Below are positions 1,206-6,604 of a stretch of 64,000 nt of DNA, in pieces (position 1 is the first letter of the stretch; the number at the start of each line of letters is the position of its first letter). The DNA is from Styela clava (Eukaryota), in assembly GCF_964204865.1 (NCBI RefSeq), contig NC_135256.1, positions 14,198,001 to 14,262,000 on the forward strand, written 5' to 3'. The position numbers and the translations under genes were made by a program. Under the pieces are notes generated by a model, which ran no database searches, was not told the origin of the DNA, and saw only the letters and a program-made list of their open reading frames with translations.

Positions 1206-4200
1206 TTACACGTTTTTACATCTTGCGATCTCTTCTTGTGTCATATTGGGAACGATTTTCAATAGTTCCTCGATGCCCGTCTTCATGTCGACTTTCGCTT
1301 TGTATCCGAGAGCACGTATTTTTGCGTATGACACCTCGTAGTCTCTCTTATCCAGATCGGTGCCGCTCTTTGATTCCGTAATACAGCACCCGGATACATT
1401 AGCTTCAATCATCTTCGCTACATCACGTTTTGTCATGTTCATGGATTCATCACCCACGTTGAAAGCTTGTGCTGTCATCGACCTGTGATAATTAAAATAG
1501 ATGACTTAGTACGATATGGTCAAATTTTGATATGTTATTGCATCTTGTATTACAACAAGAGAGCAATGATCGAATATATGGGCACGAAAACCAAAACGAA
1601 GTAGTATCAACTCTTACAGTACAGGTCCGACTGCCGACTTCACTGAGCACCAAGATCGCAAATATGCGATATTTGAACCGCCACATGGTGCGCAATTTTT
1701 AATTAGTGAAAAACAAATCCTATTGGCGAAACAGAACTTTTTGAAATAAGTAACAACCTCCTGGCGACAACAGCGATCTTTAAACCGCTGAAACGCTCGA
1801 AGAAATTGAAGAGTAAGTCGACTTTTCACAACAAGAATAAATTTAAAAAACAATTCACAGGTTCCTTTTCGTGTCCAATAATATATTCGTCAACTCAATT
1901 TCGTTGGCCTCCCATCGCATTTTAACGGACGTTTACGCCTCGAGCGATCCCACTTTTGATGCATAAAACAAAAATTGATCCTAAATCTATTTTTCCTCCA
2001 CGCGGATTTGTGTCATAACCCGTAACAAGAGCTGTTTTATAGTCAGTCGCGTCATTACTTATCGATCTTAAGATCGGTAAGTATATTGATAGGTATTTGT
2101 CTGTATGTATGTATGTCTGTGTGTCTGTTGGATGCACGCGATATCTCACGAAAGCGAGATTGAATCTGCTCCAGATTTTGCATGTGCATTCATCTTATCT
2201 CGGACCAGAAGCCTATTGATTTTGGCGAATTATGTCGTATAATTAGCGAGTTATCAATCAATTATTGATATAGTGATCTAGATTTTTGTAAAGCGAGAGA
2301 ATTTTGAAACCCGCCGAGTGTGTGTGTGCGATGCGCAGTGCGCAAGTTACAAGAGCGGATGAATCGAAACTGCAGTTTCTGTTTTGGGGGATCCCCTAAC
2401 TATCGATCGATAAGTCTTCGGTTTCCAACCGATATTCTCGTTTGTATGTCATTTACTTGCTGAACGTGCCTTTTGCTATTCGTAATTATCAGTTTAGTAT
2501 ATATATATTTTGATTTTCAAATTTGGCTAAGAATAAGAATAAACTTCGTACTCTCTCGCCAGATCGTCATTTGAACTACGTACTGCAGGACAACGAGGTT
2601 GTCAGTTGGTCTTGAAGCTTTGGCCAGCACAGAGAAACAACGGTTCCATTACATTTGAACCCACGTACATTTGAACCCACGACAATTGTACCTGCATGCC
2701 ATTGCACCGATGGAATTATTTTGGTTTTACGGATATTTGTACCCACACTAACCTAACCCATGGGTTTTAGCACCCGCATATTGATTGAACCCGCGGATAT
2801 ACACGTGGGTTGAAATGTACATGGGTTCAAATGTACGGTCACCAGAAACAACATTATCTTTCACATCAATGATAAGTGAATAAAAACAATGTATTGTGTT
2901 CGGTAATAATCAAGAAACGACAACATACACGTCTCGATGTGGTCGACTTCTAACACAGAAATAGTCGCGAATGTGCCATAATTTGATATTTAAACGTGGC
3001 GATTGTTCGTAGGCGTAATAAGAATGCGGCCCGCACGATATCGAAAATCTGTATATATGGCCCGCTAGTATATGACATAGCAGGACGAGAAATATTTTGA
3101 TTGTAATGCGGTGGTTCTCTTCAGTCTACAGTACACAATACAATAGGGTAAATATAATGGCTACAGCACCAAGTATACAATAGTGAAGTGCGCGTTCTGA
3201 CTGATTGGAGGAGATGTTTGCATGAGCACGTTCTTTTTGTTGAGGCGGTTCTATTGGATAGTCTGCTTGAAGTACCTCTTTTGCCGAATAATATAGTGTA
3301 ATAAACGTTGATGAAATAGTCCTAAAGTTGATGAAATCCTGTAAAATACACTGCTTTCTCACAAGAGTGGCCAATAATAACTATATGGAACAAGGAAAAC
3401 GTAATTATTGAATGTAAGTGTGAACTAAGCGTAATTGGTGAAACTAACAATTTCATTGTTGCAAGTTGAGAGTATATCTCCAATAGCTCAATTTATAAGA
3501 AAATTACCAACGTAACAAATAAGCTTTGTACGCACGCGTTGTCGTAGGGTAATAATTACTCTCACAGTATATCTATGTAAAAATTAAACATACATACCCA
3601 ATCGCCCAATTTATAAAGAAGATTACCGATATAATTAACAAAAAAGCTTTATATACACACGTTGTCGTAGGATAATGATTACCCTCGCATTATATGTAAA
3701 GATTAAACAAACATACCCATAGTGTTGCAGAGCAAAAACAAACGCCCTTGCTGCATCTCTTACATGAAGGAAAGTACGGCGGAAACCACCCTCGTAAAGA
3801 TCAAAGCTTCTCTTCGACACCGCCTTGTTCGTTAAATCATTTACCAGGAGATCAAGTCGTAGGCGAGGCGAAACCTGTAATCAGTATCGTGGTTAATCTA
3901 TGTCGATTATAATTTTGGATGGTTTAATATTTACTGCTCGAGCCACGCGTTGTTCGAGGCTGGCGACTTTTTGCCAAAAGGATGCGATGACGATATGTTG
4001 CCCTGGGGCCTTCCACAGCCAGTCTCGTTTATTTTATGGTATTTCACATGGTGATTATTTTGAGAAATGAAACGTGGAATTACTGAATGTTCCCGAACAC
4101 TGTTCAATCACATTTTTCGTTGGAAGTTTTTTATTCTTTTTTCAATTGCGAGACAGTCAGAACTTGAACACAGGCTATAATATACGTCAGTGTTCTAACA

Positions 4201-6604
4201 TGTCGTCATTTCCTCGACAGCGAAATTAGATGGCGCTTGCACATCTATCCTATTAATTTACCTAATCCCAAATCTATTCGGTAAGAATTCTTGAAAATAG
4301 AATGTCATGGTGAGTTTATATCTCGGTGGTATTCTCGAATTAAAAATGCTTCGTCATTTCTAAATTCGTAACTGTCACATCTGTCACTAAATTATTGTAG
4401 GCGTCATGAGTACGTCATGCGGTGTCTCACTATTTTATTTCGAAATTTAGCGAATTACTGTAACATAAGTGACATTTATAGTTTTTAGTTGGCTTTTTTG
4501 CCTACTTCTTTTGTAAAGATTTCACATGATTTTTGCAGTGAGGCAGAACAATTCACATATAGTATTTGTGCAATGCAGAGAGAAGTCTCCTTTACTTACC
4601 CCAAAAACTGTCGCCAATCGCAAGCCAACACCTCCAACTTCCCTGATGAGTTTTTCTCCATCGGCTTTTGTACTTCCGTATAAAGTCAGCGGACTGATAG
4701 GTGTTTCTTCGGTGCAGACACCTGTAACTGCTCCGTAACACGAACCTAGAAAATATTAGAATATTTATTATTATTTATTAAATGTTAGAATGTTTTTGAT
4801 TTATTGCCCACTTACGAACCTTCAAACTTCTGAGAAAAGTACAACAAGAGTTTAAAAGAATAATCGATTACTATCGATTCAATTGACTGCCAAGTTATTT
4901 ATTTATTGACAGAAAATAGTGAAATTTTTGTAAGCCAATCGCATTCGTGGTTTAAGTTCAAATATTGAAAATTCATCATCATTGTGGATTTCGCAAAAGT
5001 GATATATACAGCAGATGGAAATTTCAGATTTCCATATTAGAGATGTATCGGTATCGGCAATATCGCTTTATTTTCGATATCGGCCATTGTATCGCGTGGG
5101 TAATCCTATGCTTTATTGTTGCCTTTTTGTGATTTCTATTTGCATATTTTATTCGAAGTTAGAAAACCGTTAAAACCCCATCTAGACTAGACGTCGTTAA
5201 ATCTCCTACACTATCGTTTCATGATTTCATTGCAATACATCAGACGTCGTTAAAACCACATCTAAACACCGCTAAATCTCGTAAACTATCGTTTCTGAAT
5301 TTCATTGCAATGCAATAAATTCATTGTACAATGTACAGCATTACTGATATATATTTGTGGGATTGGACGCAATGAGTGTTCGCGCGTTTTCGAATAGTTT
5401 TCCAAGGATCGACAGGGCCAGATAATTTATTCACCCCCATATTCAACTTCTGTATTTGCCAGGATACATAGAAAAGTTGTTACAAATGGCAGTTCGATTA
5501 CATTGCATACAAATGATATTTATATTGAAAAAAAATGATCTTACACCAGAAACCTATTTTGGGCCTAAATTATAGAAAAATATTTTTCTCACCCTAACTG
5601 AGATGATATATATCAAAATTCGGTCGAAAATGCTACATGACTATTACATGCCGGCGGATGTGTAGAGGAATTCTGAACATTTACCACGAAATTTCAATAT
5701 TTTACATATTCCATACCTGTTGATGCATACACTATTCTCTGGCCCGGCTTCATGTTTTGTACTACATTTTTAGTTCCCTGGACATTTACAGTTGTTGCCA
5801 GTTCTGGATCTTTTGAACAGGCTGGGTATCCCACAATTGCGGCCAAGTGAATGATAGCGTCAACATCGGCCATCACCTGAAAATTTAAATTTATTTCTTT
5901 ATCAATATTCCCTAAAATAAAATTGTTACAACTTTAAAATCAAGGTTAACATGCTCTCAGTATTTTATACCACATTTATGTACCAATATACTTTGTCAGC
6001 AACAGATTATAATCTCAAAGTTGCCTACTGCTTAAATATATATATTTAAAGTATTAATAAGAATGCGAAAGTGCTAATTTAATTCAATTACCGTTTTCAA
6101 GTGATCTTCATCAAGCACGTTCCCTTTTATCACAGTGAGTTTGGGATGAGAAGCTATTGGAAGCAGCGGTGCGATTCCCCAGCTGTAAAAGAGTAACAAT
6201 GTATTCAAATTGAATAATTAAACCAAAGACCGAATCAATATCGGGCCGTTATATATAAAATGTAATTTTGTAAGTGTATATTTTCCTTGCAAACAATTGC
6301 ACATCAAGAATATAACGAAGGCGCTGTCTATTGTTGTTATGAAAAATATGAGTTTTAACACAAACTACATCTTTTGTACAAAGAAATTAAAGTTATATAT
6401 ATGTTGTAACCACCTATCGATGATAACTTTTGTCATATACAAGATTTAATGTTTCACAAACCTGAAAGAATCATACACAATAACTTCATATCCATCTTCC
6501 AACAGCATAGGAATCATCGTCGAACCAAGATATCCGGCTCCTCCGGTTACAAGAACTTTCTTGATGTTTTGATCATCACGCGGAGCAATTGTGGATCCCG
6601 ACAT
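1206..6604 (-). CDS. Extended short-chain dehydrogenase/reductase (NAD-dependent nucleotide-sugar epimerase/dehydratase), 6 exons, 324 aa
   Basis: Exons (minus) 6604-6462, 6182-6092, 5876-5717, 4745-4600, 3874-3717, 1482-1206; all GT-AG, phases consistent, 975 nt. Translation has Rossmann motif [38 protein letters not shown], catalytic YGSTK (YxxxK), [34 protein letters not shown] and AFNVG. Confidence 0.92.
2055..2443 (-). mobile_element. HINE/DINE-1-like element, copy 2 (in SDR intron 5)
   Basis: Reverse-complement match to both ends and the core of 467-763, with a different internal segment (about 2275-2380) containing a (TG)n run. Confidence 0.7.
2642..2843. mobile_element. MITE with 9-bp TSD (Mutator/MULE-like)
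   Basis: Imperfect TIRs GGTTCCATTACATTTGAACCCA / TGGGTTCAAATGTACGGTCACC built from TACATTTGAACCCA sub-repeats. Perfect direct repeat AGAAACAAC at 2633-2641 and 2844-2852. A related fragment lies at about 54642-54735. Confidence 0.85.
3488..3719. repeat. Diverged ~119-bp tandem duplication including the SDR exon-5 splice donor
   Basis: Two copies of AATTTATAA..ATTACC..AAGCTTT..CGTTGTCGTAGG..TATGTAAA..ATTAAACA.ACATACCCA, ending at 3600 and 3719. Confidence 0.8.
5167..5312. repeat. Diverged ~80-bp tandem duplication in SDR intron 3
   Basis: CGTTAAAACC.CATCTA...AAATCTC.TA.ACTATCGTTTC..ATTTCATTGCAAT occurs twice. Confidence 0.7.

Follow-up and report, generated by a model that had tools for sequence, protein, structure and literature searches.

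Cj1427 is a C4-dehydrogenase that is isolated with tightly bound NADH; according to an excerpt of PMC10680097, this NADH is re-oxidised by alpha-ketoglutarate to give L-2-hydroxyglutarate in a ping-pong mechanism, and the product, GDP-4-keto-heptose, is passed to the C3/C5 epimerase Cj1430 and then to the C4 reductase Cj1428. We analysed 64,000 nucleotides of the tunicate Styela clava (NC_135256.1, positions 14,198,001 to 14,262,000 of the forward strand; this whole stretch is called the window below), in which a relative of this enzyme is encoded on the minus strand between positions 6604 and 1206. The locus is an orthologue in a gene family that is widespread in invertebrate animals, and the gene is an already annotated, ordinary member of a conserved invertebrate enzyme family. 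With good but not full confidence, the best explanation is that this family has been inherited vertically and that the S. clava product is a cytosolic-looking short-chain dehydrogenase/reductase (SDR) of the extended type, from the Cj1427 subfamily.

The coding sequence is intact and runs from the ATG at 6604 to a TAA ending at 1206, with 975 nt (324 codons and the stop) distributed over six exons. A script check of the exon model revealed that all five introns are GT..AG, and the phases of the split codons (48, 132 and 233) fit. Contigs from public sequencing runs (X1, X6 and X7) were set against the model; its elements are as follows.

6462..6604, minus strand: exon 1, codons 1-47 and 2 nt; TGGAGYLGS Rossmann motif at 6547-6521, D45 at the end of beta-2; covered by X7 record 26 and X6 record 22
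6183..6461, minus strand: intron 1, GT..AG, phase 2; joint 6182/6462 in X7 record 26, loose ends 6185/6462 in X1 consistent with it
6092..6182, minus strand: exon 2, 1 nt and codons 49-78; based on the gene model, spliced contigs and the match to protein P0192
5877..6091, minus strand: intron 2, phase 0; joint 5874>6090 (cut +2) in X6, X7 and X1
5717..5876, minus strand: exon 3, codons 79-131 and 1 nt; ends within the catalytic Ser/Thr loop, S130-T131
4746..5716, minus strand: intron 3, phase 1; joint 4743>5715 (cut +2) in X6 and X1
4600..4745, minus strand: exon 4, 2 nt and codons 133-180; SCYG, and YxxxK (Y154-G-S-T-K158) at 4680-4666
3875..4599, minus strand: intron 4, phase 0; joint 3872>4598 (cut +2) in X6, X7 and X1
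3717..3874, minus strand: exon 5, codons 181-232 and 2 nt; SPRxRLDLLVN block (S182-N192) at 3871-3839
1483..3716, minus strand: intron 5, phase 2; joint 1480>3715 (cut +2) in X7 and X1; holds an interspersed repeat copy at 2073-2443
1206..1482, minus strand: exon 6, 1 nt, codons 234-324 and TAA; C-terminal substrate-side domain, with a C-terminal tail common to other animal orthologues

Transcription was assessed with the contigs of four public runs (Logan contigs, presumed to be RNA), which were aligned to positions 1206-6604 (5,399 letters). Spliced contigs from three studies (X1, X6 and X7) contained the joints 1482/3717, 3874/4600, 4745/5717 and 5876/6092, which correspond exactly to the modelled borders, an agreement well above what chance would give, and the CT..AC ends seen on the plus strand are GT..AG on the strand of the gene. 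In X7, record 25 joins exons 6, 5 and 4, and record 26 joins exons 3, 2 and 1 and extends 16 letters beyond the ATG; record 21 of X6 joins exons 5, 4 and 3, and X1 supplied the joints for introns 2 to 5 as well as loose ends fitting intron 1. The word depth of X1 contigs was 6,599-24,871 in six exon-holding bins and 8,320 in bin 1386-1565 (rest of exon 6), whereas non-repeat intron bins gave 1.3-158, except for 627 in bin 3546-3725, into which exon 5 extends with its final 9 nt. Being a poor measure, contig depth was used only to call the joined form abundant in X1. When exons 3, 5 and 6 were searched against the complete assembly of 377 Mb in 380 contigs, they matched only the window locus and one diverged paralogue and revealed no intronless retrocopy, so that the joined contigs do not come from a retrocopy. 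These results demonstrated an intact gene whose transcripts are spliced in agreement with the model, and the five-intron extended SDR of the preliminary description was confirmed at the coordinates given there. That a bacterial contaminant or a mis-assembled bacterial gene lies in the window, for which nothing beyond the similarity to bacterial proteins could be brought forward, is discarded in view of the five GT-AG introns, the spliced contigs, the composition of the window (34.7% GC, no N) and the position of the locus about 14.2 Mb into its assembly contig.

The annotated S. clava database protein P0192 (324 aa) was identical to the six exon peptides at 320 of 321 aligned residues and collinear with them in BLASTP. 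As it matches all six exon peptides, the gene has already been annotated with this structure. The sole difference concerns codon 290 in exon 6 (about 1312-1314), where the window has Ala (KIRALGY) and P0192 has Ser (KIRSLGY), presumably a polymorphism.

For the family assignment the exons were searched singly, never joined, and P0192 served as the full-length stand-in. The Pfam family Epimerase (PF01370, cut-off 20.9 bits) was found above its cut-off on exon 1 (27.2 bits), exon 3 (29.9) and exon 5 (23.6); exon 4 reached 13.7 bits, below the cut-off, and exons 2 and 6 had no match. Against all Protein Data Bank sequences, P0192 matched entry 6vo6 with E 3e-72 over residues 15-313, and the runner-up followed at 1.1e-23. 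All four exons searched singly against these sequences (exons 3, 4, 5 and 6) likewise had 6vo6 as top match, at 7e-6, 1e-4, 1e-10 and 6e-11, and lay collinear at residues 69-119, 127-171, 172-223 and 226-304, respectively. Entry 6vo6 was deposited as 'Putative sugar-nucleotide epimerase/dehydratease'; together with 6vo8, we take it to be Cj1427, the capsule enzyme of Campylobacter jejuni.

The sequence hallmarks of an extended SDR are present. The Rossmann TGxxGxxG motif occurs in exon 1 as TGGAGYLGS, and G21, G24 and G27 were invariant in 20 aligned sequences. The residues D45, S130, T131, Y154, K158, R184, D188 and N192 were also invariant or nearly so among these family members. The catalytic set consists of T131 and of Y154 and K158 in Y154-G-S-T-K158. 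In Rossmann folds, an Asp at the end of beta-2 favours NAD over NADP. The loop STGSCYG, which the preliminary description had placed at the catalytic Ser/Thr, is indeed there and is split by intron 3 (S130-T131-G132/S133), just as intron 4 separates LRLATVFG from the subfamily block S182-P-R-x-R-L-D-L-L-V-N192. The same description had ascribed the motif SPR(M/L)RxDLxVN to prokaryotic polysaccharide-cluster epimerases, and the block, as SPR(L/M)RLDLLVN, does recur in a bacterial enzyme of this kind, 6vo6. On motifs, catalytic set and profile the protein is, as judged from its sequence, an extended SDR (NAD-dependent epimerase/dehydratase, PF01370), and its kinship to a solved member, 6vo6, is specific and extends over its full length.

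Comparison of the animal protein with 6vo6 showed that both share TGGAGYxGS, a Thr loop without an acidic residue, YxxxK and (I/V)SPR(M/L)RLDLLVND, whereas a conserved extra tail of the animal protein (...P.[LM][ST]..E[IV]....KN[VI]) is absent from the aligned part of 6vo6. The 4,6-dehydratases carry an acidic residue after the catalytic Thr. At this position the S. clava protein has Gly-Ser and 6vo6 has Asn-Ser. Since the T131-G132-S133 loop lacks the acidic residue, dehydration at C6, and with it a dehydratase role, is unlikely.

GALE, UXS1, TGDS and GMDS have the same fold, Pfam family and T/S-Y-K chemistry as the S. clava protein. Their Ser/Thr loops, given in the preliminary description as SSATVYG, STSEVYG, STDEVYG and STSELYG, respectively, differ from STGSCYG. 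The automatic name of the S. clava entry, 'UDP-glucuronic acid decarboxylase 1-like', finds no support in the ranking of structures, as human UXS1 is matched at E ~1e-16 versus 3e-72 for 6vo6. The galE and dTDP-glucose 4,6-dehydratase equivalogs were rejected as well; the scores of P0192, 108.5 bits for galE (its best among the NCBIfam models) and 91.2 bits for dTDP_gluc_dehyt, lie far under the curated cut-offs of 262.3 and 365.1. GDP-mannose 3,5-epimerase (GM35E or GME) is likewise an extended SDR and acts via a 4-keto GDP-sugar; by name it was not among the 54 Protein Data Bank sequences that match P0192 at E<=1e-10 and is at most a distant relative.

By its relationship to Cj1427 the animal protein would oxidise C4 of a nucleotide sugar and would supply a downstream epimerase, reductase or aminotransferase with the product. 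In the closest prokaryotic locus, from a Myxococcota metagenome-assembled genome (MAG; L008), the homologue adjoins a GT4 glycosyltransferase, a DegT/DnrJ/EryC1 sugar aminotransferase and a second SDR, and in L010 it adjoins a second SDR and a GT4 transferase. The neighbours in both of these loci (the two closest, 2/2 examined) fit an enzyme that passes a 4-keto nucleotide sugar to other enzymes. The protein might instead be a self-contained epimerase, either a GalE-like 4-epimerase or a multi-step 3,5-epimerase, in which the 4-keto intermediate stays bound and alpha-ketoglutarate is not needed. Epimerases and Cj1427 have the T/Y/K catalytic set and a tightly held NAD in common, and for the N-terminal half galE is the top-scoring model, albeit under its cut-off; yet the full-length match to 6vo6 is about 50 orders of magnitude ahead of that to any epimerase of known structure, and the DegT aminotransferase among the prokaryotic neighbours requires a free 4-keto sugar. 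We therefore regard a self-contained epimerase as unlikely, although its chances are not small enough to be neglected.

To follow the distribution of the family, exon 6 was run with HMMER against 1.84 billion representatives, which gave 448 matches at E<=1e-3, many of them exon-sized fragments and some of them full-length. One cluster among these matches contained spider proteins, including the 324-aa Trichonephila protein P0154. As a full-length query, P0154 gave 7,067 matches at E<=1e-20, of which the best 120 (56-87% identity) were examined. A source name was attached to 51 of these, and all 50 that named an organism were from animals: among arthropods spiders, a scorpion, ticks, mites, Limulus, two myriapods and one fly (Bradysia); among other animals Priapulus, many molluscs, Lingula, three hemichordates, two amphioxus, a crinoid, Nematostella and an octocoral; and the tunicates Styela clava, Ciona intestinalis and Clavelina lepadiformis. 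A second search with the divergent unnamed protein P0009, for which the best 120 of 2,644 matches were examined, again gave only animals among the named rows and added starfish, sea urchins, a brittle star, a stony coral, an abalone and a limpet. By our own count the family occurs in at least nine animal phyla. Within the best 120 of 7,067 and the best 120 of 2,644 matches, no named row belonged to a vertebrate, nematode, sponge, ctenophore, choanoflagellate or other non-animal eukaryote, and most insects were likewise missing there.

Across animals the orthologues are 57-74% identical and agree in length, motifs and tail, so that they form one group with the S. clava gene and do not differ from it substantially except in their automatic names. 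The S. clava protein shares 73% identity with that of Ciona, 62% with Nematostella, 60% with amphioxus and 58% with the spider. Summed over exons, non-tunicate animals are 57-68% identical to it versus at most 53% for any prokaryote; among 584 confirmed prokaryotic genome stretches the best match was L008, followed by Planctomycetota with 50%.

Quick maximum-likelihood trees were calculated under LG+C20+F+G4 with support from the Shimodaira-Hasegawa-like approximate likelihood-ratio test (SH-aLRT); both are unrooted. The first had 102 rows and took in 36 of the 80 prokaryotic loci (L008-L037, L039, L043, L049, L054, L056 and L063). For the second, of 74 rows, 34 long-branch, odd-composition or near-duplicate rows were dropped and 6 were added, with four more named animals. 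The dropped rows were the representatives rep_P0091, 68, 84, 100, 93, 98, 57, 40, 32, 83, 28, 52, 37 and 64, the loci L043, L049, L063, L035, L012, L034, L032, L025, L028, L030, L027, L017, L031, L026, L024 and L033, as well as unk_P0274, Uloborus, Physella and Glandiceps. In the 102-row tree all 28 of 28 named animals and five unnamed eukaryote-like proteins formed one group (SH-aLRT 87, or 88 with P0009 and the paralogue), and in the 74-row tree one branch (SH-aLRT 98) separated 37 eukaryote-like from 37 prokaryote-like rows. Within the animal clan the tunicates formed one group (SH-aLRT 100) beside the crinoid, the hemichordates and the other echinoderms. Arthropods were grouped at SH-aLRT 94-95, the ambulacrarian group, which adjoins the tunicates, at 94-97, and bivalves, gastropods and amphioxus each formed a group of their own. 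This rough fit of the clan to animal phylogeny is expected under vertical descent, which for this family probably goes back to the cnidarian-bilaterian ancestor or further.

These results bear on the origin that had been proposed for the gene, namely that a bacterial polysaccharide-cluster SDR entered tunicates in the manner of cellulose synthase, gained introns and now serves glycan synthesis in the tunic. The nearest characterised relative is indeed bacterial, the best prokaryotic genome match (L008) reaches 53% identity, and the family clan is set among prokaryotic rows in the unrooted trees. The tunicate cellulose synthase gene is likewise glycan-related, has bacterial affinities and carries introns in the tunicate genome; unlike the SDR family, it is not known from animals other than tunicates. 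The identity values, in contrast, place the S. clava protein nearer to non-tunicate animals than to any prokaryote, every organism-named row of the best 120 of 7,067 is an animal, and the tunicates nest inside the animal clan, adjoining hemichordates and echinoderms. The proposal could be revived if the non-tunicate sequences were contaminants, but these sit on contigs of tens of Mb. Transfer into tunicates is therefore excluded, and the full proposal with its link to the tunic is left with practically no credence. Of the bacterial look reported in the preliminary description, the bacterial affinity of the nearest characterised relative stood, and what it was taken to mean for tunicates or their tunic fell with the orthologues in cnidarians, molluscs, Lingula, Priapulus, chelicerates, myriapods, a fly, echinoderms, hemichordates and amphioxus; tunicate sequences nested in a bacterial clade were not seen. 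A vertically inherited clade across Metazoa and choanoflagellates had been named there as the finding that would speak against transfer; the animal clan was recovered, with no choanoflagellate among the named best matches.

The unrooted tree would also accommodate a much earlier bacterial origin that predates the cnidarian-bilaterian ancestor; such an origin is possible, as is an older eukaryotic gene with many losses. In the former case a Myxococcota-like or Planctomycetota-like donor would have passed the gene to a stem-metazoan or earlier holozoan, with vertical descent since then and losses in vertebrates, most insects and nematodes. One branch sets the whole animal clan apart, the sequences closest to it in the 74-row tree are L008, from the Myxococcota MAG, and four metagenome representatives without a name (SH-aLRT 98), and the named rows among the best matches held no non-animal eukaryote. 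The unrooted tree gives no direction, however, each search contributed its best 120 matches only, and the unnamed eukaryote-like proteins P0009, P0287 and P0289, which branch beside the animals, could come from non-animal eukaryotes. We consider such an ancient transfer a plausible prehistory of the family that nevertheless falls short of being the expected one.

Several points weigh against a vertically inherited family of Cj1427-like enzymes. The trees are quick searches, their deeper metazoan branches have an SH-aLRT of only 84-94, and 17-31 'rep' rows were treated as prokaryotic without an organism name. The absence from vertebrates, nematodes, most insects, sponges and choanoflagellates rests on the named rows among the best matches and is no proof. 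Intron positions are not obviously conserved: a spider genomic open reading frame (ORF) from a 72-kb contig, P0005, continues uninterrupted across the sites of introns 4 and 5. A few short ORF-like proteins that look animal-like do start at residue 235, a conserved Met just after intron 5 (P0019, mussel-like; P0020, coral-like), or at residue 185, after intron 4 (P0006, Limulus-like; P0015, snail-like), but many other such ORFs are equally close to prokaryotes. No NCBIfam model was found over its cut-off, either for the single exons or for P0192, and the link between the code 6vo6 and Cj1427 is a presumptive one. That the animal member retains NADH and recycles it with alpha-ketoglutarate is a prediction from its kinship to Cj1427. 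Finally, the S. clava gene does not lie in a capsule cluster, unlike Cj1427, and an exon-by-exon search of the S. clava genome, which is weak in an intron-rich genome, gave 0 matches to GmhA (TIGR00441) at E<=0.01. The lack of a GmhA match makes GDP-heptose improbable as the animal substrate; the substrate is probably not GDP-heptose and may, at a guess, be a GDP-hexose. The gene was classed as a relative of Cj1427 and not as a GDP-heptose dehydrogenase.

In a bolder reading the family, acquired from bacteria before the cnidarian-bilaterian split, would be the entry step of an unrecognised L-sugar route of animals. GDP-D-mannose would be oxidised at C4, a separate RmlC-like enzyme would epimerise C3 and C5, and a C4 reductase would yield GDP-L-galactose, in parallel to the route from Cj1427 via Cj1430 and Cj1428 to L-gluco-heptose. 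Some ascidian tunics contain sulfated L-galactans. According to an excerpt of PMC8787198, the first finding of an activity that converts GDP-mannose to GDP-L-galactose dates from 1967 and was made in a snail, Helix pomatia, and the homologues of GM35E named in that excerpt are from plants and bacteria only. Against such a route, the wide distribution of the family (spiders, ticks, amphioxus) is not known to track L-galactose, and we regard the proposal as speculative and quite improbable. If true, it would supply the gene behind the Helix pomatia activity and explain the L-galactans of ascidian tunics, snail galactans and sea-urchin egg jelly.

Elsewhere in the assembly an RmlC-type gene (dTDP_sugar_isom, PF00908) was observed on contig C3:14476740-14478030 (L088-L090), on the minus strand, with at least three exons, all over the Pfam cut-off. 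Its product could, by its sequence, be an epimerase for 4-keto sugars. The first exon matches only generic dTDP-4-dehydrorhamnose 3,5-epimerases (E 0.002), which does not indicate the nucleotide. An ORF just downstream reads ...KRILVIGASGK... and hints at a fused or adjacent Rossmann domain.

An expressed enzyme from a subfamily that has otherwise been studied only in a bacterial capsule pathway is thus retained in many invertebrate phyla, and a literature search found no paper on animal proteins of the Cj1427-like family. If the substrate were found, a nucleotide-sugar pathway that textbooks of animal glycobiology lack could come to light, and the automatic names, which now contradict each other across dozens of genomes (UXS1-like, TGDS-like, GALE-like, heptose dehydrogenase-like), would be corrected.

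The diverged paralogue (L007) lies on contig C1:23983406-23988488, minus strand, and is 41% identical to P0192. Its five exons, in the last four digits of these coordinates, are as follows.

8488-8360, 5664-5500, 4836-4600, 4228-4115, 3762-3406, minus strand: exons of the paralogue

The paralogue lacks the catalytic set, with ASVENVYG versus ASTGSCYG and PFAATF versus LYGSTK (no Tyr, no Lys), and keeps the Rossmann motif, SPRMRLDLLVN and the tail ...ELLKIVP..SEAEIK.CQAL; judged by its sequence, a role as pseudoenzyme or regulatory subunit is conceivable. With the window gene it seems to share the first intron position only. Intronless 328-aa versions of the paralogue (P0033 and P0166), 77-92% identical per exon, were found on Logan contigs of 1.4-2.3 kb, which suggests that a related species transcribes it.

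The ESM Atlas neighbours of P0192 were generic epimerase clusters, bacterial and phage, and several of the nearest feature or structure clusters were mostly viral (Uroviricota), which suggests, as a lead only, that phages carry close members of this SDR subfamily.

Within the window, an interspersed repeat of about 280-370 nt is present in two inverted copies, at 466-747 (downstream of the gene) and at 2073-2443 (in intron 5), which bracket exon 6 and have arms that are 86-93% complementary. Contigs matching this element reached a word depth of 5,700-30,000 in X1, X5 and X6, so that it is very abundant in those libraries. Two short tandem-like direct repeats lie in introns: one, within 3513-3716, consists of 81 nt twice with 78% identity and ends at the donor side of exon 5, and the other, within 5187-5314, of 53 nt twice with 81% identity.

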